Virus record (IMG/VR): IMGVR_UViG_3300022745_000017
Span: 62,001-126,000 of that record
Direction: 5' to 3' (one strand)
DNA length: 64,000 nt
Shown here: positions 12,962-64,000 of the stretch, one piece after another
Layout of the letters: every line of letters starts with the position of its first letter
How positions within the stretch are numbered: the stretch's first letter is position 1
Notes under the pieces: generated by a model
What the model saw: only the letters and a program-made list of their open reading frames with translations
The model's database searches: none
What the model was told of the DNA's origin: nothing
Position numbers and translations under genes: made by a program

Positions 12962-12966
12962 AAACA

Positions 12967-13037: not shown

Positions 13038-13043
13038 ATAGAT

Positions 13044-25101: not shown

Positions 25102-25130
25102 TGAGCCTGTAGTAACCCTACAGACCTAAA

Positions 25131-25164: not shown

Positions 25165-25211
25165 GCATGTTCTTATCTTTTGATTCACCACCTAACTTTG
25201 CGAGAATTATC

Positions 25212-42706: not shown

Positions 42707-42710
42707 ATAG

Positions 42711-42757
42711 CCGACATAGTCCTGTACTGCTGTGCCTAGGCACAGCAGTACAGGACT
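42711..42757. terminator. 40-bp perfect palindrome between convergent genes; TATGTC follows on the minus strand
   Basis: agtcctgtactgctgtgcc-ta-ggcacagcagtacaggact at 42718-42757. Confidence 0.75.
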
Positions 42758-43497: not shown

Positions 43498-43608
43498 TTT
43501 AAACTCCAGCTATTGAGAGGAAGGGAAACGATATGTGTTTTTAATCAAGGAACCAGTAAATTGAGTGGTGAGCTAAAAACGTATTTGTAAAAAGGAAAAA
43601 AGACAATC

Positions 43609-44091
43609 ATGTCAGCATTTAAATGTACTACCAATGCTTTTAGTCCTATGACGATCGCACTCAATGAAGCCAAAGGGCCGATTGATTTAGTGCGCTTACA
43701 CAGTCTTCACCGACTACATCGTCGCCACGATGTGAGTGAAGTCACAGTGATTAAAGATCCGCACGGCAAAATTCTTAACCTGCGGAGCATCGAAAACCAA
43801 CTGCAAGGCTTACGGGTTTGGGTACAGATCATACGTGTGCGCCGAGACATCGGCCTGCGCACCAGGATAGCACTTCAGGTAAATGGTAGTGCTGGTGGAA
43901 GTTATTACGACCACGAATTAAGAAGACACGTCAAACCGCCCATGGATTTAAACAGTTCAGTGTATTTGCTGCACTACGGTGGTATCGGGGCAGTAAGTCC
44001 TAAATTCAAAACTCTCGATGAGCTCAGACAATACGCGCTAGATAAGAGAGTACCTGGCATATCTGAGTATTTAACTGATAAAGGATGGTAA
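43609..44091 (+). CDS. Hypothetical protein
   Basis: 160 aa, AAAGGA RBS. Confidence 0.65.
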   Translation: MSAFKCTTNAFSPMTIALNEAKGPIDLVRLHSLHRLHRRHDVSEVTVIKDPHGKILNLRSIENQLQGLRVWVQIIRVRRDIGLRTRIALQVNGSAGGSYYDHELRRHVKPPMDLNSSVYLLHYGGIGAVSPKFKTLDELRQYALDKRVPGISEYLTDKGW

Positions 44092-44093
44092 TC

Positions 44094-44303
44094 ATGGCCG
44101 CACTACTGCACGACGTTTGTTACTTTACCGGTGATATCACCGGCATTGACTCCGATTTACAGGTTATCAATAGCGACGAAGTTAAATTGATCTTGTTAGG
44201 CAGGAGTGGCCTAGGGTTTCAGGGTTGTTTTAAGGAGTCCGTGGCCCACCCAATACTCTTTGAATCCGAACGATTTATTGAACGAAGAGCTGTACCCGAT
44301 TGA
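44094..44303 (+). CDS. Possible small hypothetical protein
   Basis: 69 aa after AAGGA; overlaps the next ORF by 44 nt. Confidence 0.35.
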   Translation: MAALLHDVCYFTGDITGIDSDLQVINSDEVKLILLGRSGLGFQGCFKESVAHPILFESERFIERRAVPD

Positions 44304-47987: not shown

Positions 47988-48036
47988 CACATATCACTCA
48001 CTTGGTGCGGTCGCGCAGACATGCACCAAGTGAGTG
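47988..48036 (+). promoter_or_regulatory. Early promoter CACATATCAC plus 14-bp hairpin
   Basis: Motif 47988-47997; cactcacttggtgc/gcaccaagtgagtg. Confidence 0.65.
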
Positions 48037-48077
48037 TTTAGCTCATTTATTTTCTACCCCTGTAAGAAGGATTAACA

Positions 48078-49385
48078 ATGTTCGAATTGATCAAAGAATA
48101 CCCCACCCTCTCTGCTGCGATTGGTATGGCCAGTGTCACCGTCATCGGGATGGGTCGGCAGTTTCTAACCATGGCGGTCAGTAAGTTGTCGGGCTTGTAT
48201 AAACACGAGTTTAGCATCGACAGCGACAATGTGCTGTTTTCAAGCCTGCTTCAATATATCAAGGAAAATGTGCGCGGCGTTCGCAGCTTTAAGGTGACTA
48301 ACTTTTTCGCTGGAGATATGGTAGCCCACGGCAACTGGATTACAAATGATTTTGAATATCGTGAATTGGTCGTTAACTTAATACCTGAGAATATAGCCGG
48401 TATTTTGCGATTAGGCGGTGTTTTATACATCATTCGTGTTAGTGCTACTGAGTCTCGGATTGCCGGCACAGGAACAAATTCTTTAACCACGCAGAAAACA
48501 CGTATTACAATTACCGCTTTCACCAGTGACCTGGAAAAAGCTAAACTCATATTTGAACAGGTAAATAATCGTAATCGGGCGCGTGAATCAAAAGCATTGA
48601 AATACTGTAACTCAAAAGGTGCAATTTATATCCTAAGGGATCAAAACGTGAGAGAGCGCAAGAATCTCCGCCACTTTGAAAATTTAGCAGTAAAGGCATG
48701 CATCACGGAGGAGCTCATCGCTGACATTCGCAAGTTCATGGATGCACAAGATACCTATCATCGCACTGGCTGTACATGGAAGCGTATTTATCTGCTGCAC
48801 GGTCCTAGCGGCACTGGCAAGACTTCTTTGGCGATGGCAGCAGCAAACCATTTCAGAAGTGATATTTACTATATCCAGATGGGCTTGATCAGAAGTGGTA
48901 GCTTCAGTGAAACACTCAACCAGTGTGGGAAATTTAAGTTCATCCTGATTGATGACATCACTTCATCTGGGCTTGACTTGTCTGACAGCGAAGAGTCGGT
49001 TAAAGCGAGCGAAAGCTTACTGCTAAGACAACCAACCTTGGCTGAGATCTTGACAGGTCTGGACGGCCCCGATAGCCCTGAAGCACAAATCATCTTCATC
49101 ACCACTAACCACATCAATCGCTTGTCGGATAACTTTGTTCGCACAGGTCGCATCGACAAAGCGTTCTTGATTGGCAATGCTGGTCAAGAAGAGCAACGCA
49201 AGATCGCTGCGATGTACTACGATACGGTAGTTCCAGGGGTAGATGCATATATCAAGCCTTCTCGCGTGGTAGAGATCGTTCGAAGCGCAGAGAGTGCTGA
49301 GCAGGCTCAAGCTGCACTGGAGGTGGAGGTCGTCAATAACCCAGGGATCGGGTACGAGCAAGAATACACGGTCAAGCTGGACTAA
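48078..49385 (+). CDS. BCS1-like membrane-anchored AAA+ ATPase, copy 1
   Basis: N-terminal hydrophobic helix, HGPSGTGKTS, ILIDD, ITTNH, RTGRID. Confidence 0.85.
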   Translation: MFELIKEYPTLSAAIGMASVTVIGMGRQFLTMAVSKLSGLYKHEFSIDSDNVLFSSLLQYIKENVRGVRSFKVTNFFAGDMVAHGNWITNDFEYRELVVNLIPENIAGILRLGGVLYIIRVSATESRIAGTGTNSLTTQKTRITITAFTSDLEKAKLIFEQVNNRNRARESKALKYCNSKGAIYILRDQNVRERKNLRHFENLAVKACITEELIADIRKFMDAQDTYHRTGCTWKRIYLLHGPSGTGKTSLAMAAANHFRSDIYYIQMGLIRSGSFSETLNQCGKFKFILIDDITSSGLDLSDSEESVKASESLLLRQPTLAEILTGLDGPDSPEAQIIFITTNHINRLSDNFVRTGRIDKAFLIGNAGQEEQRKIAAMYYDTVVPGVDAYIKPSRVVEIVRSAESAEQAQAALEVEVVNNPGIGYEQEYTVKLD

Positions 49386-49478
49386 TCGGAAAAACAACTG
49401 GGGATTGCTCAATCCCCAGCTTAACTTTTAAAGGAGTGCATATGAGTACCTACAAGTATAGTGTCTTGCAAAGGCGAG

Positions 49479-49619
49479 ATGAGAGGTGGTGTTTTGGAGT
49501 TCGATGCTGTCGTTGGGCGAAAAGAAACCTTACGGCAGTATTTGGATGAGCGCTACTTTGAGCGACTCGAAGCTCTCAAAGCGCTCGGTGTAGAGCGCAT
49601 TATCTACGGATTTGACTGA
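49479..49619 (+). pseudogene. Truncated or minimal paralog of 44582..45031
   Basis: Hand translation: MRGGVLEFDAVVGRKETLRQYLDERYFERLEALKALGVERIIYGFD. A good AGGAG-ATG at 49442 is in another frame. Confidence 0.5.
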
Positions 49620-50137
49620 TGAAAAACAAACTCATTGCTCGGCGTAAATCGATCGCTAACAAGATCATTTTCAACAACGGGTACTTGGATTGCAATACGC
49701 TCTTAAACCCGGACTACACGATCCCCAAAATCATCGCCCGTTTTTCAACAAACGCTGCGACACTGTTTGGTTTTGCCAGGCGATATATCTCGGTCTATGA
49801 CCAAGACGAGAGGATGTCCAAAGGCTGGCTTAGTGGCAGTTTCATGTCTTACTTTGCACAGGCTTATCTCCTCCAACGGTTTGCTAAAGCGCTTGACCAT
49901 AACCCAGGCGACAATATCGCTGAACAGTTACGAGAGCTGTTTTATGATTACGCCTGGGAGGGATCATGTAAAATCGACTTAGCTTCGCTTAAGAAGGTCA
50001 TATTGTTGCACAAAAAGTTAACCCGTCTTCACAGCAAACGTAAAATACATCTGTCGAAAGCGGTCTTATATGACAACGAGATAATCATCAGCGTAAAAGG
50101 ATATAGTTGTACTGTAGAAATAATCAGGCCCATATAA
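49619..50137 (+). CDS. Hypothetical basic protein
   Basis: 172 aa, TGATG coupling. Confidence 0.6.
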   Translation: MKNKLIARRKSIANKIIFNNGYLDCNTLLNPDYTIPKIIARFSTNAATLFGFARRYISVYDQDERMSKGWLSGSFMSYFAQAYLLQRFAKALDHNPGDNIAEQLRELFYDYAWEGSCKIDLASLKKVILLHKKLTRLHSKRKIHLSKAVLYDNEIIISVKGYSCTVEIIRPI

Positions 50138-50186
50138 CTAACCCGGACTCTCTTGTCCTTTCACAACCTTTCATGATTGGAATGCC

Positions 50187-50855
50187 ATGAAATCACTCTT
50201 CGAAATGCACACCGACATCCTGGCCCACCATATCCAGCACGACCCAGCTCAAGCGGCTAAGGTCAAGCTGCTGGATGCCATCGGCAAATGCCTGGGGAAT
50301 ATTTACAAAAGGCCCGTGGCTACCACGATCTGTACTGACCTCAAGAGCGCCGCTAACTCACTCTTCGACGAGATCGAAGACGCTCCTGACGGCATTTACA
50401 GCAACATCGCTGTACAGCAAGGCGTTGGTGAAGCTAGCGACTTGTTTGAGCGCAGCGCTGTTGTCATCTATACGGCTGAGCCCCATTTGGTGGGTAATGT
50501 AGGCGATGCCTATTTGCCCAGCACCGGCATCTGGAAGCACAAGCTCTTGCAGTTTGGTGCTGCTTGGGTTGAGCGCTTGCAGCAGCTTGGCTTCAGTATC
50601 GATGATGCTGTGGTTTTGTCGCCCCAGGACTACGGGATCAATGAAAGCTGTATATTGTTTCACAAGGACGATGTGTGGCTTGAGTTGCGTGTGAGTTACT
50701 GGCGCAAGCTCGACCCGGCAGAAATGTCTGATTGGCCACATGGAGCTTACGAGCAAAGCCCGAAGTATCGTCTGGCACCGGCTGGCCGCACGAACTTGGT
50801 AGACAATCAGTCGTGCTTCGTGCGGGTTCGTGCTAAGGACACTGCTGGCGAGTAA
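50187..50855 (+). CDS. Hypothetical protein
   Basis: 222 aa, followed by hairpin 50865-50891 and a T-run. Confidence 0.75.
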   Translation: MKSLFEMHTDILAHHIQHDPAQAAKVKLLDAIGKCLGNIYKRPVATTICTDLKSAANSLFDEIEDAPDGIYSNIAVQQGVGEASDLFERSAVVIYTAEPHLVGNVGDAYLPSTGIWKHKLLQFGAAWVERLQQLGFSIDDAVVLSPQDYGINESCILFHKDDVWLELRVSYWRKLDPAEMSDWPHGAYEQSPKYRLAPAGRTNLVDNQSCFVRVRAKDTAGE

Positions 50856-50915
50856 GTCTTTTCAGGGTGGTGCTATAATCTAGCACCACCCCACTCATTT
50901 TCTTTTTGAGGACAC

Positions 50916-51482
50916 ATGGAAAACCCAACAAACGTGCAAAACAGCCTTGAATACCTGCAAACACTGCGTGATGCAGGCGTTGATAAGACTGATATTTTAG
51001 GACGACTTACTGAGCAAGAAATGCTTTTGCTCAGTAAGCTATTGCTTACACCGGTTGACAAGTCATTCGTGCTTTGGCAAAACATCGATGTGTCACGTTT
51101 TTATCCAAACAGTGCGCCAGAAACTGACGCACTGCCTGTTGCAAAATTGTCGTTTGACTTGGCGGCACTTGTAGATGGTTACAAGGGTGAGGTTATTGTC
51201 AGCAGTCGTGACGAGTCCATCAGCGACATTCGTCAGCAGGCGATGTTCGCTCATCACTACAACCATGCCGACTACTACAGCATCACAAATTGGCCTAAAA
51301 ACCAATACAGCGATGATTTAAAGAAAGGACTTGGGCCATGCTCTGGGTTTCTGGATAAGATATCAGACACTATCTTGGATGAGTACTATTTTGCAACAAA
51401 GCAAGTCGAGGAGGCTATCCTCTTAGTGATCTTATGCACTACTATCGCCATTGACATTTGCTTCAAACCAGTGAAAGGTTAA
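50916..51482 (+). CDS. Hypothetical protein
   Basis: 188 aa, GAGGA RBS. Confidence 0.7.
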   Translation: MENPTNVQNSLEYLQTLRDAGVDKTDILGRLTEQEMLLLSKLLLTPVDKSFVLWQNIDVSRFYPNSAPETDALPVAKLSFDLAALVDGYKGEVIVSSRDESISDIRQQAMFAHHYNHADYYSITNWPKNQYSDDLKKGLGPCSGFLDKISDTILDEYYFATKQVEEAILLVILCTTIAIDICFKPVKG

Positions 51483-51487
51483 ACATC

Positions 51488-52171
51488 ATGAAACAGTATA
51501 TCCTGCCATCGTTTAATAACCTGGCCACCTTCTGCGAATTATATTTCAAAGATAACCCTGAAGCGTTCGGTAAGTTCCGGCAGATGTGTGGAAGAATCGA
51601 CTCCATGGTAAATGGAGCTCCGGCCCAACTACTCTACAACAACCGGATGGTAGTAGGGTTAGAGTTGGCTTCCGCTGCGCCGTTCTTTTGTGAGCCGCGT
51701 GAAGGCTACCGGATGATGCTGCGCATCGAGGAGCTCAAAATCCTCATGGGCGGTTCGCCATATTCGGATGGCTCTGAGACGATAGATGTGCTCACTACCG
51801 CTCCATCGGTGGTCATTGAGCATTTCTTTAAAGATGCTTTCGATCACTTGTTAGGTATGAACATCTATAGCCACAACACCGACCATACCGGCTTTCACTA
51901 CATCAACGCCCCAGTTGGCAAAGGTGCGTACTTAGCTGTCACAAAGAAGTATCTTCCAGACTTCTTTGTGAGATTGAGAATGGGTCTATGGCGCAAAATT
52001 CACCACCATGACAAATTGACAATGGGTGAGTTGCTGGATAGCGACTTTGTTGAAAATCTAACAGCAGCGTTTGGGGTGCATCAAAAATCTACAGTACTTA
52101 TGCCGCTGACAGATAAACAAGTCGGTGAGTTTGCTGAGCAAGCTCGTAAAGAAAAACAACCCAAGTCATGA
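51488..52171 (+). CDS. Hypothetical protein
   Basis: Start moved to MKQYIL after AAAGG. Confidence 0.7.
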   Translation: MKQYILPSFNNLATFCELYFKDNPEAFGKFRQMCGRIDSMVNGAPAQLLYNNRMVVGLELASAAPFFCEPREGYRMMLRIEELKILMGGSPYSDGSETIDVLTTAPSVVIEHFFKDAFDHLLGMNIYSHNTDHTGFHYINAPVGKGAYLAVTKKYLPDFFVRLRMGLWRKIHHHDKLTMGELLDSDFVENLTAAFGVHQKSTVLMPLTDKQVGEFAEQARKEKQPKS

Positions 52172-52181
52172 AAGGTTAGTC

Positions 52182-52586
52182 ATGGATAAGCAAATCATCG
52201 AGATGATGGACCGGGAACTCACCCTGCTCCAAGATGCCTTGAAATACGGGCTGGATAGCGTTGCCTTTTGTACATGTCCTACTAATACACCGCTATTCTT
52301 GCAGCTATATGCCAAAGTCTCCACACAGCGAAATTCGTGTCAATTCGAACTACCTGCTTCAAGCATCGAAACTCTGTTCTTTACAGCGTGTGAAGAATCA
52401 GAGCCCACCATCTTGAGGCTGTTTAGTCCGAGATCAGAAATAACTGACGAGGGCCAGCGCAGACATCTGGCGCGCCTGTCATTTGTTTTGGTCAATGCGA
52501 TGTCCTTCAACCAGTGTAAGGACATCGCCCGGTATGTTGGGCGAGAAGATGAGTTCGTGCACAGCTGGATGTACTGGGCTGGTTAA
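52182..52586 (+). CDS. Hypothetical protein
   Basis: Start moved to MDKQII after GAAAGG. Confidence 0.65.
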   Translation: MDKQIIEMMDRELTLLQDALKYGLDSVAFCTCPTNTPLFLQLYAKVSTQRNSCQFELPASSIETLFFTACEESEPTILRLFSPRSEITDEGQRRHLARLSFVLVNAMSFNQCKDIARYVGREDEFVHSWMYWAG

Positions 52587-52592
52587 GGAATA

Positions 52593-52640
52593 GTAGTAGC
52601 AGGGAGAGGTCTTGACCTCTCCCTGCTACTACGCTTATTT
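52593..52640 (+). terminator. 19-bp hairpin with CTTG loop region
   Basis: gtagtagcagggagaggtc-tt-gacctctccctgctactac, then gcttatttt. Confidence 0.7.
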
Positions 52641-52659
52641 TTGTTAAGAAGGATTAGAA

Positions 52660-53880
52660 ATGATAGAATCGTTAAGCAGTCTGCCTACTGTGTCTTTGTT
52701 AGCTGGTGGGCTTGTCATGTCCCTTGCGACACTTGGCCGGTCTTATATCAACAAAGCGTTTATAAGCATATCTGAACGGTTTCTTCAGCGCTTTACTATC
52801 TGTCTAGGTGAAGATGGGCACAGCCAGCTTGTCTGGTATATCTCTACCCATCCTAGTATTGTCAATGCTTACAACACAAAAATCATTCGAACGGTTAAAG
52901 GGTCTTATCCGACCTGGAACCGGGATGGTGATGACAATAGTCGTTTTCATCAACATGTACAGCCTATTCCAGCTAAGGTATCAGGCTACATGCGTGTGCT
53001 CTCGACTCTTGTGTTCATCAAGTCCGATATTCAAAAAGATCGCTCGGACTCGATGGGGGATATTAGCATTACGGTGTTTACACTCGATGAGCAACGTGCT
53101 AAGAGTGTGATAGAGCATATGCTTAATAGAGGAGCTGCTCACCGCATCCATACTAATCGACAAAACAGTGAGTCTAGGATTAAAGTACCGGGCACAAATT
53201 CCAACTGGACAACATTTCCGAATACGCGTGACTTGAGTAAGTTGTATTTGAAGAAAGGTCTTAAAGAAGAGATCATTCGAGATTTGACGGAGTTCATGAA
53301 CTCTCCTGATCTGTACTACAAACGCGGTACGCCGTGGCGTAGAAACTACATGTTCCACGGCCCAAGCGGAACGGGTAAAACTTCTTTGGTATTGGCGCTT
53401 GCCAACCACTTTAAGACAGATGTCAGCATAGTTCAGTTGTCTACCGTTGTACGCGGAAAGTTAGCGTATACCTTGACGAGCATTGGTACATTCTCCTTCG
53501 TACTCATAGAAGACGCCGACCGTGATCAGCTCCGCCCAACAAAAACCGGTATGCTTGAAGAAGTGTTAGGGCCTAGCTTGAGTGAGTTGTTTCAAGCGTT
53601 TGACGGGCCAGCGAGCACAGAGGCGCAGATCATCTTTATCAATACGAACAACCCTGACGCGTTTGATAAAGACCTCTTGCGCCCAGGTCGCATTGACCGT
53701 GAGTTCTACATCGGACTGATGGAGCAAGAGCAACAAGTGAGCCTGAGCGAGCTCTACTACGACACACCTGTAACTGGAGTGGTAACGCCTATCAAACCCG
53801 CAGCGGTGCAACAAGTCTACCAGATGTGTAAAACACCACAGCAAGCGCAAGCAAGACTCGAAGAGTTAGCTAACATGTAA
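52660..53880 (+). CDS. BCS1-like membrane-anchored AAA+ ATPase, copy 2
   Basis: N-terminal hydrophobic helix, HGPSGTGKTS, VLIEDAD, INTNN, RPGRID. Confidence 0.85.
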   Translation: MIESLSSLPTVSLLAGGLVMSLATLGRSYINKAFISISERFLQRFTICLGEDGHSQLVWYISTHPSIVNAYNTKIIRTVKGSYPTWNRDGDDNSRFHQHVQPIPAKVSGYMRVLSTLVFIKSDIQKDRSDSMGDISITVFTLDEQRAKSVIEHMLNRGAAHRIHTNRQNSESRIKVPGTNSNWTTFPNTRDLSKLYLKKGLKEEIIRDLTEFMNSPDLYYKRGTPWRRNYMFHGPSGTGKTSLVLALANHFKTDVSIVQLSTVVRGKLAYTLTSIGTFSFVLIEDADRDQLRPTKTGMLEEVLGPSLSELFQAFDGPASTEAQIIFINTNNPDAFDKDLLRPGRIDREFYIGLMEQEQQVSLSELYYDTPVTGVVTPIKPAAVQQVYQMCKTPQQAQARLEELANM

Positions 53881-53887
53881 GCATTAT

Positions 53888-53923
53888 TTTCACACCACAG
53901 CGCTAAATTGCTGTGGTGTGAAA
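53888..53923 (+). terminator. 15-bp hairpin
   Basis: tttcacaccacagcg/tgctgtggtgtgaaa followed by a T-rich tract. Confidence 0.6.
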
Positions 53924-53954
53924 CCTTTTCGTTCTTTTTATTTGGAGTAAGACT

Positions 53955-54623
53955 ATGCTTGAAATCTGTAAGCCCTCTTTTAAAAGTCTCTCAGGTGCTA
54001 TCGCCCATGAGCTTTGTCGCAATAACGTGTCTCCAGACTTGGCTAAATTGACCGATGTCTGTAAGAGCCTAGACAGTACTAACACATTCGGACACTACTG
54101 CAACTACACAACCATTTATTCAGAGGGTAAGAGGTATGTCGATCGATTCTTTGTTGATGGGGCTAATCGAACAGCTCACACTGAAGATGGTTACTATGTC
54201 GAGTACTGGGTAAAACTGGTGCTCGATAAGAGATGTCATTTCTTGACAAAAGGTGATACGTTGGGTGAGCGCTGTATTTCGCCCTTGTTTTCAAAAACCA
54301 TTGAGGGCACACGTCTGGAATCGGCCCTGAGTAAACTCGGTTTTGTATGTCCAGACACCGGGGGATTTCGAGGCAAGATTACTAACAAAGGAGCTACTCT
54401 AGAGTTTATCTCCGAAATAAGCAATAGGTTTCCGGTCGTAATGATTGATGCTTGGTTGCGCAAGCACTTTGATGCTGACTCACAGCTAAGCTGGGCTGAC
54501 ATTGAGCTAGGTAAGAAAGCCGGTTTCACCGATATGAGTGACTGGTTGCGTAAAGACCCGAGCCGTGTCGTAGACATCGATGTGCCTGTATTACCTGAGA
54601 CAAGCGTCTTGCTAGAGAGATGA
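53955..54623 (+). CDS. Hypothetical protein
   Basis: 222 aa, GGAG RBS. Confidence 0.7.
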   Translation: MLEICKPSFKSLSGAIAHELCRNNVSPDLAKLTDVCKSLDSTNTFGHYCNYTTIYSEGKRYVDRFFVDGANRTAHTEDGYYVEYWVKLVLDKRCHFLTKGDTLGERCISPLFSKTIEGTRLESALSKLGFVCPDTGGFRGKITNKGATLEFISEISNRFPVVMIDAWLRKHFDADSQLSWADIELGKKAGFTDMSDWLRKDPSRVVDIDVPVLPETSVLLER

Positions 54624-54716
54624 CCCCTCAAACAAGATAATATCAACCCCATATTACAGCTGAGCATATGGATCTAAGCCAGTGCTCTGTTGTAACTCCT
54701 TTAAAAGGAAATCGTT

Positions 54717-55163
54717 GTGAAAATCACTCCCACCCCCATGCATGAAGTCAATTTGAAGTTCTTTATCGAAATGCTTGGCTTGACAGATACTGAGGCCAAA
54801 ATGCTCACCGAGGCGGCTACACCTGGTCGCCATTGGGCTACTGCTCCGGGCTATGGTTCAAGTATTTATCTGTGCACAGACAAAGAAAACAGACTCACCT
54901 ATGGTGATTGGGCTGTGGTGTGTAATACATACCCTCTGTTTGTGCGTTACTTTTACGGTGAGCAAAATACAGCAGCTGAGAAAGAAGATGAGTCTGATCA
55001 AGCGCTCACTATAGTCAAGCGATTACTACCTAGTCTTTTCCCCAAAGACACCATTGTGACTAGCAGCCATCTCCCTGGTGACAATATCTATAAGTTTTCA
55101 ATGGAGTCTATGCATCTGAACTTTGATGTGTTTGTTTGCAAAAACCCCGACGCACTTAACTGA
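54717..55163 (+). CDS. Hypothetical protein, paralog of 55188
   Basis: Shared PGRxW, TDKxNxLxYGxW, RLLP..PK, FDVFV.K. Confidence 0.75.
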   Translation: MKITPTPMHEVNLKFFIEMLGLTDTEAKMLTEAATPGRHWATAPGYGSSIYLCTDKENRLTYGDWAVVCNTYPLFVRYFYGEQNTAAEKEDESDQALTIVKRLLPSLFPKDTIVTSSHLPGDNIYKFSMESMHLNFDVFVCKNPDALN

Positions 55164-55187
55164 TTACCGAGCGTAGTCCAAAAGGAG

Positions 55188-55688
55188 TTGATGATGAGAT
55201 TCCCAAATACAGACACTGTACATGAATGTGACATGGCTCTTCTTGAGAAGTTACGCGTGATTGGCCCAGACACACAGGTGTACAAAGATACCGCTAGACC
55301 AGGCAGGTGGTGGGGTACAAGCGCACTGATGAATCGCATGCACCTCATGACTGATAAAGGCAATTGTCTTGAATATGGTAGTTGGAGCGTAGCCTGTATT
55401 TCTCACTACGGTTGGGTTGAGTATTTGCCAGCCGCTATTACGAGCAAAGCAATCCCCACGCCGGAGTTAAGCTCCGATTATCGGAAAGCTCTAGATATAG
55501 CGAGTCGGTTACTACCGAAGATATTGCCTAAAGGCTGTCAAGTCGTAACTAACACTTATCTCAATTGCGAAGATGAGTTAGTTTACCGATTCTCAAGAAG
55601 AGTTGGTACATCTAGCTTCGACGTGTTTGTTGTTAAGGCTAAATGCATGGGTGAGCCTATTCTCAGTCATTTGACGAAAGGAAACTGA
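55188..55688 (+). CDS. Hypothetical protein, paralog of 54717
   Basis: Same motifs as 54717; AAGGAG RBS. Confidence 0.75.
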   Translation: MMMRFPNTDTVHECDMALLEKLRVIGPDTQVYKDTARPGRWWGTSALMNRMHLMTDKGNCLEYGSWSVACISHYGWVEYLPAAITSKAIPTPELSSDYRKALDIASRLLPKILPKGCQVVTNTYLNCEDELVYRFSRRVGTSSFDVFVVKAKCMGEPILSHLTKGN

Positions 55689-55748
55689 AGTAAAGATATC
55701 AATACCCACCTCACACCCCAGAGATTAACTCTTATCTAGGTAAACATC

Positions 55749-56213
55749 ATGCCACACTTATCCGACATAATTCTCACTGATAACCCGGTAAAATATAGTC
55801 ACAATACAGAACTTACTCAAGAGGAGTACGACATTCTCCTAGGCCTGGTTACTGATGGCCTGGAATGGCGAGATTACAGTTTGCAAAAGAGTAAGGCGCT
55901 CGTACCGTCCGAGTGCCAGGAATTCGTAATTTTGCCAAGAACTTATTTAACTGTTGTCACTCCGTACAAAGTTATTGGCTATGTCTTCCGTGATTCACCA
56001 GAAATACCTGCTGAGCGCACAGAAAAGGTAAAAGCGGCTTTTTCTAAAGCACACCCCAACATCCCGACCCATCAGTTCAAGGTGTATGAGTTTATAAGCT
56101 GTCAACCGCCGCACTTACTCAGCCTGGCCTCAGTTAGCCTGACCATTGTGGTTGGGCTGACCAATGTCAACCTGGTTTTCAAATCCAGGCCCGGTGACCA
56201 GCTGTTCTTTTAA
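55749..56213 (+). CDS. Hypothetical protein
   Basis: 154-aa ORF. Confidence 0.6.
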   Translation: MPHLSDIILTDNPVKYSHNTELTQEEYDILLGLVTDGLEWRDYSLQKSKALVPSECQEFVILPRTYLTVVTPYKVIGYVFRDSPEIPAERTEKVKAAFSKAHPNIPTHQFKVYEFISCQPPHLLSLASVSLTIVVGLTNVNLVFKSRPGDQLFF

Positions 56214-56231
56214 CCCAATAGAATACCCCAA

Positions 56232-56666
56232 ATGAACAAACCCGACCAACCATGGCTCAACGAGCCTAACTACGCCCACTGGGTCAATGAGCAAACAGGC
56301 TTACAATGCATCTTGTCCCGGCATCCTGACGCCCTGTTTTGGGCAGGGTATGTGGGAGTGGATGCAAATAACCCCCTGTACCAGAAGGACTATTGCACAG
56401 TTGAAATTGGTAGTATGTGGGTACATAAAGGGTTGACGAACAGCTCCTTTGGTTTGCCTCACATGTGGGACTGTCAAGACGTGCAAATGCTCGAAGACAA
56501 GGGTCTGTGGTACTTTGGCTTTGACGCTGGTCACCTCTATGATTACCAACCATATAGGGCAGATAGCAGACCACCTATGTCTTGCGAGACCTATCGCGCC
56601 TACGAATACATGCGTGAAAACTGCAATGCCTTGGCTTTGAAAATCTTCGAGGAGTCTAAGAAATGA
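56232..56666 (+). CDS. Widespread uncharacterised phage protein
   Basis: W.NEP...G.QC...R....WAGYV.V...NP.Y...VHKGLT...WYFGFDAGH..D...YR pattern recalled from many phages. Confidence 0.7.
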   Translation: MNKPDQPWLNEPNYAHWVNEQTGLQCILSRHPDALFWAGYVGVDANNPLYQKDYCTVEIGSMWVHKGLTNSSFGLPHMWDCQDVQMLEDKGLWYFGFDAGHLYDYQPYRADSRPPMSCETYRAYEYMRENCNALALKIFEESKK

Positions 56667-57289
56667 AATACGATGGGTTCACGACTCTACCCTGGGCAAG
56701 CATTCCACCGGTGCTAAAAGAGTACCGGTTTGACGAGCACATATGTGTTTTACCAGCGGGTGTTACTGTGTCAGGCAGGGCGTCTCGCAACACGCCTCGC
56801 TTCATGGTCAGCAAATCATCGACAGTGTATGACTACGTCGGTGTAAAAAGCTTAGGTGTTCGAAAAGACCAGACGGTCCGGGAAGTCTACTACACGTTAG
56901 TAGGCCTGTGCCGAAAAAGTCAAACTTACCTGAGCGCAAATCACCTGAAGATTGCACATACAAAATCGAGGGCGTCTAGCATAGCCGCAATGCTGTCAGT
57001 CGACCTGGGCCTGAATATCCCTGACAGTGCTATCTTGGTTTATCTTGGTCGCAAGGCAGGCTGGCTCACGGTGCGCTATGCGCCGCCTGTGCGGTTGTTG
57101 CCGTATCTGAGTCCCTTGCAAAGACTTGCTTATACCTTCAAACTCGGGGCTGATGTCGGCCCACTTGCCCAGGCAGCAGTTGACAAGTTCGTTGCTGTTC
57201 AAAATGCCGCATGCGAAGCGCTGCTCAAGGACTTCAAACGCCGGCAAGCCGATGTAGAGCGTTATCGGTTCTTTGGAATGATTCAGTAA
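56663..57289 (+). CDS. Member 1 of a four-gene paralog array
   Basis: MKYDGFTTLPWASIPP, VLPAG, YLSANHL, PPVRLLPY, LLKDF. Confidence 0.8.
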   Translation: MKYDGFTTLPWASIPPVLKEYRFDEHICVLPAGVTVSGRASRNTPRFMVSKSSTVYDYVGVKSLGVRKDQTVREVYYTLVGLCRKSQTYLSANHLKIAHTKSRASSIAAMLSVDLGLNIPDSAILVYLGRKAGWLTVRYAPPVRLLPYLSPLQRLAYTFKLGADVGPLAQAAVDKFVAVQNAACEALLKDFKRRQADVERYRFFGMIQ

Positions 57290-57308
57290 GTTAGAAAGGG
57301 TATCTGGT

Positions 57309-57899
57309 ATGCATTACGACGAATACACTCACCTGAAGTGGGGCAGTGTCCCACCAGCACTGGAAGTGCGTCAATACGAAGGCAACGATTATGTCATGCC
57401 AGTAGGAATGTTTTTCGTCAATGCCACTTACGCAGCTAACGCGCGTTTGGGCTTGACGCCGTCTAGCATCTTCAATAAAGTGCTAGGCAAGACAAGCATT
57501 GGCTATAAGAAACACGGTAGCATGACACAGCTGTATCGCAGCTGTGCTTGGCAGCTAGATGTGCCTGAAGTTCTCAACCACAACCACCTACTGCAAGCGG
57601 GCTATAAATTCCCCGAAGCAGATTCTGCGGTGTCACGTATCTTTACTGATCTGGGTATTAACCGCATCAAAGAGATGCCCACTCTGATCAAAAAGAACGG
57701 CGAACACTACGACATCATCTACCGTGTGCCGGTGCGACTGTTGCAGTACTGTGATGGTCAGAAGAACTTTTGCAGGCGCTGTGATTGTTCTGATGGTGCC
57801 GTTGGCGTACAAAACGCGCTAGCTCATCTGGAGAAGATTCACAACGACCTGTGCACGCGGTTGATTGAAGACTTTAACGCTAAGCGTGCTAAGAAGTAA
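57309..57899 (+). CDS. Member 2 of the paralog array
   Basis: MHYDEYTHLKWGSVPP, VMPVG, LNHNHL, VPVRLLQY, LIEDF. Confidence 0.8.
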   Translation: MHYDEYTHLKWGSVPPALEVRQYEGNDYVMPVGMFFVNATYAANARLGLTPSSIFNKVLGKTSIGYKKHGSMTQLYRSCAWQLDVPEVLNHNHLLQAGYKFPEADSAVSRIFTDLGINRIKEMPTLIKKNGEHYDIIYRVPVRLLQYCDGQKNFCRRCDCSDGAVGVQNALAHLEKIHNDLCTRLIEDFNAKRAKK

Positions 57900-57943
57900 T
57901 CCATCTGTACTGACTGACTAACTCAGAAAGGTAGTGTAGACAA

Positions 57944-58051
57944 ATGTCTAAAGACGAAACCATCTGTAAAGACGTGATTAAGTGGCCTGTGGGAAGCGAG
58001 ATCTTGCGGGTTCACACCGGTGAAATGGTGGAGTTTCTCAGACACCCTTGA
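57944..58051 (+). CDS. Possible 35-aa ORF or remnant inside the array
   Basis: MSKDETICKDVIKWPVGSEILRVHTGEMVEFLRHP; AGAAAGG upstream. Confidence 0.35.
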   Translation: MSKDETICKDVIKWPVGSEILRVHTGEMVEFLRHP

Positions 58052-58096
58052 GTGCATGTGGTGCGAAATGGAAAAAGCCGGAATCGTCTAATCAAT

Positions 58097-58129
58097 GCTA
58101 GTACGGTGGGACAATCCCACCGTACTAGC
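58097..58129 (+). terminator. 14-bp hairpin
   Basis: gctagtacggtggg-acaat-cccaccgtactagc. Confidence 0.55.
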
Positions 58130-58145
58130 CAACTAGGAAACTGCC

Positions 58146-58769
58146 ATGAAATATGATCTCTTTAGCCTTATGGACTGGACTTCTATTCCTCCCCAAATGA
58201 CTGAATACGTTGCTGGGGATGATGTCTTTGTTTTGCCAACTGGTTTGAGCTTGTACCGTATACACCGTGGCATCTACTGCATCGATGCTACTAATAACGT
58301 AAAGCTAAGAAACATACTCGAAAAGGATCGATTTTACGATAGTCGGTTTGAATCCGTCGCGCAGTTGTACCGGTATGTGGCAAACAAAATCCGGCATAAC
58401 CAAGATTACTTGAGCGCTAACCACTTGCGCATCAAGGGCGGTCCTAAGGTTGCTTTTAATAAGAGCGATGAGATTTTTGCTTCGTTCGGTGTTGTAAAGC
58501 CTGAAGGGATTGGCATTATAGCTTCTCGGTCACATAAAGGGCATGTGGCGCTTCGTTACTATGTACCTGTACGTCTTCGAAAGTATAACGGAGGAGATAT
58601 AGATGTCAAAAAGACCCTGGTGCATGAACCCCAAGCACAAGCTGCACACATGCAAGAAATCCTAGACTTGTTTGCAGAACTTAACAAGACGTTCATCGAA
58701 ATGCTTTTGGCTGACTTCAAACAAAGCCAGGAGCAGCTCAGAAACGATCCCACAGTCATCACCAGATAA
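58146..58769 (+). CDS. Member 3 of the paralog array
   Basis: MKYDLFSLMDWTSIPP, VLPTG, YLSANHL, VPVRLRKY, LLADF. Confidence 0.8.
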   Translation: MKYDLFSLMDWTSIPPQMTEYVAGDDVFVLPTGLSLYRIHRGIYCIDATNNVKLRNILEKDRFYDSRFESVAQLYRYVANKIRHNQDYLSANHLRIKGGPKVAFNKSDEIFASFGVVKPEGIGIIASRSHKGHVALRYYVPVRLRKYNGGDIDVKKTLVHEPQAQAAHMQEILDLFAELNKTFIEMLLADFKQSQEQLRNDPTVITR

Positions 58770-58808
58770 ACACCATAGGGTTAAACCCCATGACGATAGG
58801 AGAGATGC

Positions 58809-59444
58809 ATGAACTATGACCTCTTTACATTGATGCCTTGGCGTTCAATTCCGCCTACTCTCATCAACCGGTTTATCGGTGATGACAGCTATGTCTTGCC
58901 AATGGGTATTAGCTTGAGCGTGAGCTCAGATCGAAAGAGGGCTTACATTCACATCAGTACAGCAAACGCTGCTTATGACACTCTGAAGGTCAAACAAATC
59001 GGTGTGCGACGAGAAGATCTCGCTGATGCATACACCGATATGGCTGCTAAGCTAGCAGTCGATGAAGCCTATCTGCAAGCAAATCAGCTCACACCTAACC
59101 GAGTGTTTGCTAAAACAGATACGTTTACCAAGCAGATGCTTGACAAAGTCGGTGTGCAAGTCAGTGGCTACCGTGTAACGATCTCTGAGCAAAATAACCC
59201 CCGGCTAAAAGCACAGCTCATACGGGTGTCACGCCACATCCCTAAGCGCTTGCAAGCTTATTCAGACGGTAAGGAGTGTCTGATCTGTTACCACTGGCCT
59301 GTGGACTTTACAACCAAAGACTTACGGCGCACACTGAGCTACTTTGAGTGGAAATTCAAGGAGTATGAAGACAAACTGATGAAGGATTTCGAGCTGCTGC
59401 GTGAGCGAGTTCGTGCGAGAAAACAAAGTGGCGCGGTGTTGTAA
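58809..59444 (+). CDS. Member 4 of the paralog array
   Basis: MNYDLFTLMPWRSIPP, VLPMG, YLQANQL, IPKRLQAY, LMKDF. Confidence 0.8.
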   Translation: MNYDLFTLMPWRSIPPTLINRFIGDDSYVLPMGISLSVSSDRKRAYIHISTANAAYDTLKVKQIGVRREDLADAYTDMAAKLAVDEAYLQANQLTPNRVFAKTDTFTKQMLDKVGVQVSGYRVTISEQNNPRLKAQLIRVSRHIPKRLQAYSDGKECLICYHWPVDFTTKDLRRTLSYFEWKFKEYEDKLMKDFELLRERVRARKQSGAVL

Positions 59445-59449
59445 TACAG

Positions 59450-59526
59450 TTTTCTTCAGTCACATATATCGTCAGTGTGTTAGTGATGATGCTAATCTGA
59501 CACACTCCTTTATCTGCATCGTGGAG
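59450..59526 (+). ncRNA. Conserved promoter plus pseudoknotted leader, copy 3
   Basis: P1 59474-59483/59497-59506; TGATGC 59487-59492 with GCATCG 59516-59521; GGAG 59523-59526. Confidence 0.65.
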
Positions 59527-59532
59527 ATTGAA

Positions 59533-59631
59533 ATGAAAAACGTACTGATTACCGCAAGCCTGGTCAACGTGCTGACCAAGTTGACGGGTTGGTGGCTGGA
59601 GCTAGGCTGGGACGGTGAGTGGTGTACGTGA
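59533..59631 (+). CDS. 32-aa Trp-rich peptide
   Basis: MKNVLITASLVNVLTKLTGWWLELGWDGEWCT; GGAG RBS, own promoter/leader and terminator. Confidence 0.6.
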   Translation: MKNVLITASLVNVLTKLTGWWLELGWDGEWCT

Positions 59632-59638
59632 AGCGTTG

Positions 59639-59686
59639 AGTACAGACAGGGGCTAGCTAGCCCCTGTCTGTACTATCTTTTTTTCT
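59639..59686 (+). terminator. 36-bp perfect palindrome plus T-run
   Basis: agtacagacaggggctagctagcccctgtctgtact at 59639-59674. Confidence 0.75.
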
Positions 59687-59752
59687 TGATCAAAATAATA
59701 TCACCCGCATATCATCCCTTTGAGCACTGTCGCTCACAACGGAAAGAAACAA

Positions 59753-61744
59753 ATGTCTGTTACCGAATCTGAAAAGCTCCCATATCAAGAATTCTTGCAA
59801 AAGGCCGTGGGGATTATTGGCACACTCCCTTTGATACCACTCAACGATTTCACCAACGGTGACGAGCATTTCTATATCGATCTGAGTCCCGTGTCCCGCC
59901 TCTGTAATGCTGTTTTGGCCACAGCAGACCGTGTCACGGATGCCATCAAAAATCACGGGGTGAAAAAGATCTATGTCGGGATAGAAAACGTGCCGGTGAA
60001 CGAACCTGTTCGCCACGTCGTACTGGCTGATAATACCGTCGACTTGAACATGAGAGCGCCACTACTGCTCGAAGCTATTGATCACATTTTGAAAAACCGT
60101 CACCAAGGTCTGGTCATCCTGCACAACCCCGGCTTCAACACCACCATTTACCTGATTGAAAAAGCCATGACACCTGATACCCAAGTCGAAGAAAACAGCG
60201 TGCAACCCCTCTCCCATTTTACGATCACGCCGCAGCGATACATCTACATTTCCCCGAAAGCTACGGTGGAAAACTTGACATGCTTTATGGCTGACGCCAT
60301 GAGTCAGCATCTGAAGATAGATGGAAAAGCCTGTGTAGTACTCGGGCACACCACCTTCAGCGACCAAACCCTCGTCAAGCCTGTATACAGCGTAACCGTC
60401 TCCGGTACTTTGAATCAATTGGAGGAAGTTGTTGGGTCTTTGGTTAAGCGAGTCCGAAATGATAAAGACTGCTTTTTGGTCGTCACCAATATGGGCGGCT
60501 CCCCTACCGGCGACACCTTCCTTTTACTAAAGCGAGTCGAAATGCCTGAAAATACCCTGGCTAATACCATGAATCAACCAGCGGCACCCAAACGATTAGT
60601 GCGGCTGTTTGCAAACCCCGAGATAGTCAACAGCGTTATTATCAACGCGGTGCTCGAAGCCTTTACAGACATGCGTAACGGGGGCGTTGACTCGATTACT
60701 GTGGACACTACAGTCAATCCACATGAAGGACAAGAACTTTGCAAGGTGCACACTCTGGACCGCGCAAACCTGAATGGCACTGATATCGAACGCTACGTCA
60801 TGTGGGTGTGGACTCAGCATTTCCACCGTGTGATCTTCAGCATTGATGACGGTAGCGGCCAATATAGCGTTGAGGCCTATCGGTATAACCCGACGTACAC
60901 CACTGGATCGAACGTGGTGGAGCAAGCACCGCCCACCCAGACATATCCTGCCAAGCTGGATTTGGTCGCCGACCAACAGTTGGGGTTCACTGCTTTGGAA
61001 AGCCAGATCAAAGAGGCGTTCCCTGGCATCTATTTGGGTCAAACACAAATTAGCTGTGTGGCCAAGTCCAATGATTGCCCAGCAGGATGGATGGAAGAAA
61101 CCACCCACGCCATCGATACGAAAGAGCTAACCATCGAGCTAATTCTTGGTGAGGCCAAGAAGATTTACATGAAGCAGTTCGACAAACTCACCGTCACGCA
61201 CAGTGGTAGTTGGTGTATGCTGCGGCAATGGAAATATGTCGCAGTAACTACTGCTGCTGAGGAAAAAGCAGAACCGGTGCCGGAACCCGCAGCTGCGACC
61301 GATACACAGCCCACACCGGCGGAGCCTGCGTTCAAACGCCGGCGTGCTGATGTCTTGGTGAAAAAGATGCTCATGTGCACACGGGTGCTGTACAAGGACA
61401 GTGAGTTCATCACCATTCGTGTCTTAAGCGCGGAGCATAAAGAAACCATCACACTCCCGAATGGGTTGGTTGTGCGTCTCGGCAACTGCTTTGATACACG
61501 GGTGATGGCGCTGACGGGTCGTCACAATACCACGGACAAACCTGCTGCTAATTTCGAAACCTTCATCGATGCCAATAAGCTGGAGCCTGTCCAGCTTTAT
61601 TGGGTGCGCAGCATCAACAACAAAGAGCGCTGGCAAGACATCGAAGGCATGAAGTTTTCAACGGAGGACCTCTCGCAGCTTCTACAACAATACAGCAGTT
61701 TGGTGAGCGTTGCTCTCGATGGGCGTGTGTCTTACCTCGCTTGA
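59753..61744 (+). CDS. Large modular hypothetical protein
   Basis: Start MSVTESEK after GGAAAG; about four alpha/beta blocks separated by P/Q/T/E-rich linkers. Confidence 0.75.
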   Translation: MSVTESEKLPYQEFLQKAVGIIGTLPLIPLNDFTNGDEHFYIDLSPVSRLCNAVLATADRVTDAIKNHGVKKIYVGIENVPVNEPVRHVVLADNTVDLNMRAPLLLEAIDHILKNRHQGLVILHNPGFNTTIYLIEKAMTPDTQVEENSVQPLSHFTITPQRYIYISPKATVENLTCFMADAMSQHLKIDGKACVVLGHTTFSDQTLVKPVYSVTVSGTLNQLEEVVGSLVKRVRNDKDCFLVVTNMGGSPTGDTFLLLKRVEMPENTLANTMNQPAAPKRLVRLFANPEIVNSVIINAVLEAFTDMRNGGVDSITVDTTVNPHEGQELCKVHTLDRANLNGTDIERYVMWVWTQHFHRVIFSIDDGSGQYSVEAYRYNPTYTTGSNVVEQAPPTQTYPAKLDLVADQQLGFTALESQIKEAFPGIYLGQTQISCVAKSNDCPAGWMEETTHAIDTKELTIELILGEAKKIYMKQFDKLTVTHSGSWCMLRQWKYVAVTTAAEEKAEPVPEPAAATDTQPTPAEPAFKRRRADVLVKKMLMCTRVLYKDSEFITIRVLSAEHKETITLPNGLVVRLGNCFDTRVMALTGRHNTTDKPAANFETFIDANKLEPVQLYWVRSINNKERWQDIEGMKFSTEDLSQLLQQYSSLVSVALDGRVSYLA

Positions 61745-61791
61745 TCAACCGGGGGCTTAGGCCCCCATTTCTTTACTCTGGAGCGTTTGAA

Positions 61792-62643
61792 ATGGAAAAA
61801 CCAGTCATTGGTACTGAAATCGGCCAATACCTGTTTGGTGTGTATCACAACGGCGATGATGTGCGTGTCAAGCTGTTTGTGCAAATCCCTCCCAATGGGG
61901 CCGATGAAAACAAAGAAGGTGTTTGGCTGGATGAGCATACAGAGCTGCTGTACAAACTCACTCTTAAAGACATCGGTGGTCCTGCTGTTTTCCGCCGTGT
62001 TAATCAAGATGGTGAAGATTACTACACACCGCTCTTGTCCGATTTTGAGCGTGATGATGTCAAGGCTGCCATCATTGCACTAGCCACTTCTGCTCAGGTT
62101 TCTTACTCGCAAAAGTCACTAGCAGAAGCACTGACTGCTTGCTATAGCCACTACGCTGATTACGTCTACATGCTCTCGCAGTCTCGTCAAAGTACACCTG
62201 AAAAACAGGATGATGATGTCTGTTTGCCCATTGATTACCCACGTCTTGTCGACGTGTATGGAATTGGCAAGGAGCTGGTGCTGGTGGACGCCTCTGGCAA
62301 GACAATCCCAGAAAAGACAAGTCAGCGGTTTGTAGGCGTGATTACATCGGCACAGATCTTTACCAGTGTCAAGCAAAATGGTACGCTAATGATGCTAGAC
62401 GCACCATATGTGCGTTTTACGGCATCAAAAAAGGTCGGCCACGAACCGAGCTTTGTCGCACTGGTTCGACTTAACACCACAGCACACCCTGGGGCCGATC
62501 AGGTTTGCTGGGAAGACGCCAATGTCGAGGAAGACTACTGGGCCGATGCTCGCCAGTACCTTTGGCTAATGGGCAATAAAAATCCAGTTCTCAAGAACAT
62601 CAGGACAGAAAATCCCGGTGTTGACTGGAGTGTCTGGCAATGA
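61792..62643 (+). CDS. Hypothetical protein
   Basis: Start moved to MEKPVIG after GGAG. Confidence 0.75.
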   Translation: MEKPVIGTEIGQYLFGVYHNGDDVRVKLFVQIPPNGADENKEGVWLDEHTELLYKLTLKDIGGPAVFRRVNQDGEDYYTPLLSDFERDDVKAAIIALATSAQVSYSQKSLAEALTACYSHYADYVYMLSQSRQSTPEKQDDDVCLPIDYPRLVDVYGIGKELVLVDASGKTIPEKTSQRFVGVITSAQIFTSVKQNGTLMMLDAPYVRFTASKKVGHEPSFVALVRLNTTAHPGADQVCWEDANVEEDYWADARQYLWLMGNKNPVLKNIRTENPGVDWSVWQ

Positions 62644-62948
62644 GCTTTGCACAAACGATCGCTGCGTTCTACATCTCCCAGTACCACCAGATCCAAGCCG
62701 GTGGCTGGGCCGTGGCCATTACCATCATCATGCCTTACGTGCTGAGCGTCAACACCATGTTCAGCATGCACTACGTCGGCAAGCTGCGCACCATTGGCTG
62801 GGCACTCCAGTTGGGTGGACAGTTTGGCTGGCTGCTGTGGATGGTGGTGTCTCAGAACTTCGGGTTCTTGTTGCTCAACGCCTTCATGTGGTATGTGATC
62901 ATCAAGAACCTCTTGGCCTGGCGTAAGAACCCGCCGTCACAAGGCTAA
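62640..62948 (+). CDS. Small 3-4 TM membrane protein, PnuC-half-like pattern
   Basis: GWALQLGGQFGWLLW...FGFLLLNAFMWYVIIKNLLAW; ATGA overlap. Confidence 0.65.
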   Translation: MSFAQTIAAFYISQYHQIQAGGWAVAITIIMPYVLSVNTMFSMHYVGKLRTIGWALQLGGQFGWLLWMVVSQNFGFLLLNAFMWYVIIKNLLAWRKNPPSQG

Positions 62949-62960
62949 ACAACAACCACT

Positions 62961-63007
62961 GCGCTGTACTGCTTGGCTAAATACCAAGCAGTACAGCGCT
63001 CTTTTTT
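62961..63007 (+). terminator. Intrinsic terminator
   Basis: gcgctgtactgcttgg/ccaagcagtacagcgc, then tctttttt. Confidence 0.75.
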
Positions 63008-63020
63008 GAGGATGATAAAC

Positions 63021-63440
63021 ATGTCTGGTTTTAAAGCATTTCTGGAATTGGCTCAGATGGAACAAGAGGAGTTAATCCAGCCAGCTGATGGTAGTGGCGC
63101 TATCGCTGTGACTTATTATGTTGACTTTCATGGCACACGCTACCGTGTAAAATGCGAGTATGTTAATAACGCAGTTGGAGCTACTAACGAGATCTCTTTC
63201 ACGCATAGTGACGAAGGGTTTAACTTACAGGAAGCTCTCACGACCCGCAAGGATGAGTTAATCTTTCAATACCTCATCAGGATGCCTAAGCGCAATACAC
63301 GGATTTATCTGGCCTTCGACGATGCAAACAACGAGGCTAGCTGTATTTGCAAACACCCCCGTTGGTGCATCAAGATCACCACCACTAAAATAACCAAACA
63401 GCTCGCAGAGGTTAACAATGAAAAAGTTCAACCCGAGTGA
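63021..63440 (+). CDS. Hypothetical protein
   Basis: Start moved to MSGFKAF after GAGGA. Confidence 0.65.
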   Translation: MSGFKAFLELAQMEQEELIQPADGSGAIAVTYYVDFHGTRYRVKCEYVNNAVGATNEISFTHSDEGFNLQEALTTRKDELIFQYLIRMPKRNTRIYLAFDDANNEASCICKHPRWCIKITTTKITKQLAEVNNEKVQPE

Positions 63441-63903
63441 GTTAGCACAGGTGCGCCAGCGGGTAGAAGAGTTGATGGCTAAGCCCATTGATGAAAATGT
63501 CGAACCTGAGCTACTGGCTTGTGAGTTGAGTAGCTTATACTGGGCTGGCAGCTTTTACAACGCGCTCATGCGCTCTGTGCACATGGCGTGGCGAGGTAGA
63601 ATCACTGTAGATGAGCGCCCGGTCATCTCTGGCGTTTTTGTGTGCTCAAAGTACCTACACCTCGATGTCTTGATCGCTGAGGGTAGTCTGGTTAGACAAC
63701 TATTCAATGAAACCAATACCGAGCCTGCTACCGACCCTACAAAGGCTATCCGGGCCATACTACCTGACTGCCACATCTTCGGTCAGTACTTTGAAAACAA
63801 CGGCAAGACGTACCGCGCAGTCTACACATTTCGTGTGAGTGGCTTCAAAGAGCCACCTATCTTACTTATCTCAACCACCTCTTGCAAGAAAGAACTGTTA
63901 TGA
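63418..63903 (+). CDS. Hypothetical protein
   Basis: 161 aa, GAGG RBS. Confidence 0.7.
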   Translation: MKKFNPSELAQVRQRVEELMAKPIDENVEPELLACELSSLYWAGSFYNALMRSVHMAWRGRITVDERPVISGVFVCSKYLHLDVLIAEGSLVRQLFNETNTEPATDPTKAIRAILPDCHIFGQYFENNGKTYRAVYTFRVSGFKEPPILLISTTSCKKELL

Positions 63904-64000
63904 GCCAACAAGAATATGTGATCGGTGAACAAGTCGGTCAATGCTTACTAGCGACGGAGCGCGCTGACATCTTTCTTTTTCAGCGACTACCCGATGACAA
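63900..64000 (+). CDS. Partial CDS running off the window end
   Basis: ATGA overlap; MSQQEYVIGEQVGQCLLATERADIFLFQRLPDD. Confidence 0.55.
   Translation, partial: MSQQEYVIGEQVGQCLLATERADIFLFQRLPDD

Follow-up and report, generated by a model that had tools for sequence, protein, structure and literature searches.

A tandem array of four divergent paralogs of a nearly orphan protein family in a chimallin-encoding jumbo phage

The four paralogs and their relatives

The window analysed here, a stretch of 64,000 nucleotides (nt) corresponding to bases 62001-126000 of the 217,973-base-pair (bp) virus record IMGVR_UViG_3300022745_000017, which has terminal repeats, carries on its plus strand a tandem array of four genes (56663-59444) for small basic proteins. 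The four open reading frames (ORFs) are evidently collinear paralogs of a real and functional family, and their divergence appears to be old and is not demonstrably fast. Our preferred reading, which we hold tentatively, is that the proteins would be non-enzymatic binders, with nucleic acid as the favoured ligand and with targets that diverged between the copies.

Paralog 1 (56663-57289; 208 amino acids, aa; isoelectric point, pI, 9.8) has a start codon that overlaps the upstream stop (ATGA) and a GAGGAG element 8 nt upstream. It is followed by paralog 2 (57309-57899; 196 aa, pI 8.8), paralog 3 (58146-58769; 207 aa, pI 9.0) and paralog 4 (58809-59444; 211 aa, pI 9.5), and a Shine-Dalgarno-like motif precedes each of the four. 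Their MAFFT alignment runs end to end with few gaps, contains 22 invariant columns and places the other copies at 24-26% identity to copy 1, within an overall range of 21-28%; BLASTP connects all six pairs over nearly their full length (E 2.4e-9 to 2.5e-19). The proteins share an N-terminal M-x-Y-D-x-[FY]-x4-W-x-S-[IV]-P-P motif and, further along, V-[LM]-P-x-G, [YV]-L-x2-N-[HQ]-L, P-[VK]-R-L-x2-Y and L-x2-D-F. Both the array of four divergent tandem paralogs and these motifs had been proposed, at the same positions, in a preliminary description made from the sequence by eye, and the ORFs, the alignment and the pairwise comparisons bear them out.

That description had also regarded the ~200-aa family as unrecognised, and database searches agree. 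With the four proteins, Pfam (hmmscan, E<=1) returned a single row, a sub-threshold NTF2-like match on the terminal helix of paralog 4, and the PHROGs scan at E<=1 gave chance-level rows only (all E >= 0.068), with no match to a head, internal or structural protein. PADLOC-DB contained no matching family at E<=1 for any of eight members (these four and the four relatives described below), and NCBIfam and the PDB sequences held no meaningful match. None of 50,697 phage records was matched by blastn or tblastn, a word-indexed protein search with both alignments recovered the window's own proteins only, scanning of viral contigs with a single protein confirmed no relative, and the ESM Atlas, queried by features and by shape, yielded nothing usable. 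A degenerate DNA pattern of the N-terminal motif had no match in viral contigs; its sole match among metagenome contigs (L010) was attributed to chance and lies inside a 633-aa eukaryote-like oxidoreductase ORF.

A family-wide profile search, suggested as a check in the preliminary description, found exactly four copies in the whole 218-kb genome and no fifth (next best score, E 1.2); at a BLASTP cut-off of 1e-5 the array is the largest paralog family of that genome. Relatives elsewhere came from an exhaustive HMMER search, in which the four-sequence profile was compared with 1.84 billion cluster representatives (~15 billion proteins). This gave five further rows, four of them from two metagenomic phages, L005 and L009. 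The L005 contig (5.7 kb) holds three tandem members of 203, 206 and 209 aa. This array lies in the same neighbourhood as that of the window, since counterparts flank it on both sides: its 5' neighbour is homologous to the 144-aa phrog_2164 gene of the window (33% identity), and on its 3' side a membrane protein and a small ORF are followed by a free-standing 163-aa protein, 25% identical to the C-terminus of a 674-aa protein of the window. L009 has one copy, in a different context, behind homologs of the window genes at 8098-10012; a pentapeptide-repeat protein (L009 3673-4137) stands directly after this broken member. A 580-aa helical repeat protein (P0009, E 7e-5), five repeats of which match the terminal-helix part of the profile only, was judged spurious. 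In Ralstonia phage RSL2 the small hypothetical genes downstream of the AAA ATPase are different ones and the family profile has no match, and a literature search on comparable jumbo-phage paralog arrays returned nothing relevant. We consider the family nearly orphan, apparently confined to three freshwater phage lineages.

The age of the duplications was assessed with an identity matrix and a tree of eight members (four from the window, three from L005 and one from L009, its two pieces separated by X). All 28 pairwise identities lie within 23-34%, within and between genomes alike, and a maximum-likelihood tree resolves no branching order among them, giving a star. The L005 genes on either side of the array share 33% and 25% identity with their counterparts in the window; the family is thus about as diverged as its flanking genes, and the duplications go back at least to the split between the two phages. 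Because two copies of the window are as different as a window copy and a copy of a distant phage, we regard their divergence as old.

Recent change was followed in a strain present in two other freshwater runs (X3 and X6), which differs by ~2% across the array. The differences listed for the four genes amount to 38 codon changes, 26 synonymous and 12 non-synonymous. Since about three quarters of random codon changes are expected to be non-synonymous, these counts indicate purifying selection on the four genes and not ongoing diversification. The preliminary description had taken the array for a diversifying family of the kind seen in host-phage arms races: the divergence between copies holds, as an old feature, and the ongoing diversification does not. 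Strain differences are concentrated in paralog 4, above all in its 3' end, the most variable stretch between strains (23 in 265 nt). Other samples contained L005 phage copies that were 100% identical and so uninformative on selection. At 58037-58050 of the window the contigs of X3 and X6 break off and run on into dissimilar sequence, which points to inserted or replaced DNA between paralogs 2 and 3 in these strains.

The genome carrying the array is that of an uncultured freshwater phage, a nucleus-forming (chimallin-encoding) phiKZ-like jumbo phage, because it encodes chimallin (42280-44220 of the whole record, G000; 646 aa; phrog_4795 'nuclear shell protein', E 1.6e-27; PF25677 with 43.5 bits, the cut-off being 27), beta-like pieces of split multisubunit RNA polymerases (phrog_2962, phrog_3295 and phrog_3015) and a phiKZ-type virion protein (phrog_3248); two DNA polymerases are also encoded. 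The phrog_3248 protein matches 290 phiKZ-like phage records, all at <=35% identity and best in Burkholderia, Ralstonia and Xanthomonas phages, and with a best match only 35% identical the phage is evidently far from any named phage. Near-identical DNA is present in freshwater metagenomes of four studies. Jumbo phages that form a nucleus have to bring their own proteins for handling DNA and RNA, and most of their accessory genes are uncharacterised. The array offers a clean, well-delimited case among them, a multicopy family kept for a very long time whose confident two-domain model matches no known fold or family, and it is a sensible choice for structure determination and for binding assays.

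Predicted structure and proposed mode of action

An AlphaFold2 model of paralog 1, built on the eight-sequence alignment, has a predicted local distance difference test score (pLDDT) of 87.2 and a predicted template modelling score (pTM) of 0.80. Residues 1-96 form an N-terminal domain of four strands, a short helix, a strand and two helices, which modelled alone reached a pLDDT of 89.3 and a pTM of 0.81. After a linker of low confidence (residues 98-102), the C-terminal domain consists of a helix, two strands, a helix, a strand and a 39-residue terminal helix (165-203), on which the conserved L-x2-D-F sits. Complex prediction with two copies (ipSAE 0.00) speaks neither for nor against self-association.

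Conservation was examined over the seven full-length members, a column being counted as conserved when kept in at least six of them. For the most part such columns are aliphatic, aromatic, proline or glycine, and they are largely core residues. Conserved polar positions are few (D4, S13, N93, H94, which is not invariant, R144 and D190), with R144 as the sole conserved basic residue, and the conserved columns include no catalytic constellation and no invariant His/Cys/Asp/Glu cluster. All seven intact members are basic (pI 8.8-9.8), with a net charge of +2 to +9 in the C-terminal half and of -3 to +7 in the N-terminal half; in contrast, four of five upstream genes and the downstream 674-aa gene encode proteins of pI 5.1-6.2. 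We read this pattern as that of a kept scaffold with putatively variable, positively charged surfaces. On this point the pI values, the column conservation and the family scans agree with the preliminary description, which had seen variable basic segments between the shared motifs and no nuclease domain; the scans gave no other enzymatic domain either.

Mechanistically, the array would be a lineage-specific multigene family of a nucleus-forming jumbo phage, in which each gene gives a small basic two-domain alpha+beta protein acting by binding and not by catalysis. One scaffold would be maintained by the hydrophobic core, by prolines and glycines and by the packed N-terminal segment, with the surface and the Lys/Arg positions varying from copy to copy. 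The copies would have split their ligands between them long ago, each being now under purifying selection. As ligand class we favour nucleic acid, which could be phage or host DNA or RNA, and binding would be driven by positive charge, mostly that of the C-terminal half. The four proteins would be translated from one transcript of the accessory region, starting upstream of 54717 and ending at 59639-59674.

Several observations weigh against this proposal. Foldseek against the PDB and BFVD gave nothing at E<=1e-3, the Atlas shape search never exceeded a template modelling (TM) score of 0.5, and neither fold nor sequence match links the family to a known nucleic-acid binder. Structure prediction and Foldseek had both been suggested in the preliminary description; the first produced a confident two-domain model and the second no known fold. 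A known fold is thus not recognisable in the model, and we do not claim the fold as proven new. The positions of the basic residues are not conserved, which fits non-specific electrostatics, or merely the binding of acidic proteins. The L009 copy is split in two frames and lacks the conserved Y-L-x2-N-H-L segment, so the family is dispensable in at least one lineage or the contig is misassembled. No RNA run holding the array stretch was found among the sequencing runs searched, and the strain comparison draws on the 40 best-supported of 196 differences, from low-depth contigs.

Alternative explanations

The main rival to nucleic-acid binding is the binding of host proteins, a possible explanation to which we give less credence. 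The paralogs might be inhibitors or decoys serving takeover or anti-defence, each tuned to its own target or allele, with the basic surface contacting acidic partners. A conserved scaffold with a variable surface suits such a role, as does a copy number that differs by lineage (four, three and one broken). So does the location of the array within 110-146 kb of the whole record (window 48000-64000 and beyond), the region that holds every paralog pair of the genome detectable by BLASTP at 1e-5. The L009 member, moreover, adjoins the pentapeptide-repeat protein, whose class includes DNA mimics. However, no PADLOC or other family match supports this role, the strain-level changes are purifying and not diversifying, and the structural matches to class I type III secretion chaperones are within noise: scores for ExsC, SigE, SycE, SycT, CesT and SicP fell below the noise ceiling. 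Class I chaperones are bacterial acidic homodimers of ~130 aa, whereas the paralogs are basic and phage-borne, have 196-211 aa and carry an extra N-terminal domain.

It is rather unlikely that the four paralogs build one hetero-oligomer, for instance a component linked to the phage nucleus, to the virion or to the injected contents, with each copy filling its own position. Equal lengths and strict collinearity over a very long divergence would be expected of such subunits, the genes lie side by side, the first one being translationally coupled, and the long C-terminal helix with its conserved L-x2-D-F would suit assembly. Paralogous internal head proteins are a known trait of such jumbo phages, and the window has a match to the PHROG 'internal head protein' (phrog_2497) at 22007-23545. 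Against a fixed assembly, the copy number varies (four, three and one), one-to-one orthology between the window and L005 arrays is not resolvable, and the array has no structural PHROG match and lies outside the structural modules. The inner body families of phiKZ-like phages do resemble the array: they too consist of strongly diverged tandem paralogs and occur in the same kind of phage. They differ in that the array proteins match no PHROG and are much smaller, and in that the array lies in an accessory operon and not next to structural genes. The match at 22007-23545 is itself the first of three adjacent ORFs (22007-26720; 512, 512 and 517 aa) that are probably a phiKZ-type inner-body paralog set, too diverged to be paired by BLASTP at 1e-5.

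The preliminary description had likened each half of the proteins to an AP2-type unit. Sequence-specific DNA-binding modules of this type, free-standing kin of the AP2 domains of phage homing endonucleases, would agree with the basic charge and with an N-terminal domain modelled as consecutive beta strands followed by a helix. We now hold this very unlikely. Pfam gave no AP2 match at E<=1, no AP2 structure appears among the 50 best rows for the N-terminal domain, and no repeat relationship between the two halves is detectable (hhalign of the N-half and C-half profiles: probability 0.07%, 6 aligned columns). The AP2/ERF domain itself (Plasmodium SIP2, PDB 6sy0; PF00847) has no profile match to the family and a structural score within noise, and the paralogs differ from it in their ~200 aa, their two dissimilar domains and their 39-residue terminal helix.

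Finally, decay or absence of coding function is extremely unlikely. The broken L009 copy and the lack of an RNA run holding the array would fit it, but it is contradicted by seven other copies that keep open frames of 196-211 codons despite ~75% sequence divergence, by the synonymous excess between strains, by confident and consistent models and by a ribosome-binding site at every copy.

A further comparison is with the lineage-specific ORFan families found in the variable regions of large phages. They are like the array in tandem duplication, variable copy number (four, three and one here) and uncharacterised function, and the neighbours of the array are likewise small uncharacterised paralogs. 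The array differs in being unusually old and well kept, with full collinearity at ~25% identity, a confident two-domain model and presence in three lineages. As matters stand it is one more orphan phage family whose function is not demonstrated, and neither the arms-race nor the AP2 reading has been borne out.

Neighbouring genes and transcription context

The array is probably part of one polycistronic transcript (~54660-59674), in which the four paralogs are preceded by four small genes, since no promoter-like motif was found directly before any paralog and the nearest candidate lies at 54637-54670. This site (ATAATATCA..CCCATATTA, plus strand), the sole candidate promoter upstream of the array, is a weak variant of the genome's conserved promoter-like motif and lies before the 148-aa gene; its matrix score is 12.8, where the canonical sites listed by the scan reach 28-35. 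The upstream genes (54717-56666, plus strand; 148, 166, 154 and 144 aa) are co-oriented with the array. The first two (54717-55163 and 55188-55688) are tandem paralogs of 32% identity (E 6e-20) with no family match, and the last (56232-56666), the phrog_2164 protein of 144 aa, has one match among named phages, Bacillus phage G gp45 (29%). Strong terminator-like hairpins with a T run, both on the plus strand, delimit the unit: one at 53888-53923, at the end of the preceding AAA-ATPase operon, and one of 16 pairs at 59639-59674, the first terminator 3' of the array. Rfam had no match within 53800-59800.

Between paralogs 2 and 3, the 246-nt spacer contains a 35-aa ORF of doubtful coding status (57944-58051, plus strand), where the variant-strain assemblies break, and a perfect hairpin of 13 bp with a 5-nt loop (58098-58128, plus strand), which lacks a T tail and ends 17 nt before paralog 3. 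Such intergenic hairpins are common in the genome, and this one may serve processing, stability or pausing.

The word CACATAT is the single strongly over-represented intergenic word of the genome, with 28 of its 37 sites falling in the intergenic 6.6%. It occurs in two forms: a short promoter-like site, which precedes chimallin among other genes, and a ~65-nt repeat in 12 copies. A review on transcription in jumbo phages holds that, in such genomes, the motif detectable by bioinformatics marks early promoters (PMC7598289). By analogy, early expression of the array, as assumed in the preliminary description, is possible.

One copy of the 12-member repeat, with its TCACATATA promoter-like core and structured leader (59436-59502, plus strand), stands at the end of the array and starts the next unit. 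The whole element, in which the core is followed by a conserved ~60-nt leader, occupies 59436-59532, 5781-5878 and 12946-13040 in the window, and nine more copies lie at 20121, 27243, 126558, 130006, 136907, 138420, 139205, 145744 and 156969 of the whole record; seven of the 12 fall within the 110-146 kb region described above. The leader hairpin covaries over 9 pairs, with up to four standard pair types per pair and 10-12 of the 12 sequences paired. Its loop UGAUGC is the complement of GCAUCA, immediately ahead of the Shine-Dalgarno sequence, and this pairing covaries too (GGUGU/ACACC, AGUGC/GCACU). Because both the hairpin and the loop pairing covary, the leader is suggested to form a pseudoknot beside the ribosome-binding site. 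The copy scanned against Rfam matched no family.

These leaders invite a bolder version of the nucleic-acid-binding proposal, which we consider quite unlikely: the family would represent a new fold, restricted to a single clade of nucleus-forming phages, whose members act as specificity factors that bind nucleic acid, each copy recognising its own subset of phage transcripts or promoters. One candidate target would be the 12 genes sharing the conserved, putatively pseudoknotted 5' leader, a copy of which abuts the array, and the copies would set the timing or the translation of accessory genes.

Beyond the array, a 32-aa ORF (59533-59631) stands alone between the leader element and the strong terminator as a very short transcription unit. 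The 674-aa protein that follows (59720-61744) is acidic and appears by eye to be internally repeated, and has no Pfam or PHROG match. On the other side, an operon of small uncharacterised genes is bracketed by two AAA ATPases (48078-49385 and 52660-53880; phrog_7485), paralogs of 32% identity whose N-terminal region is BCS1-like.

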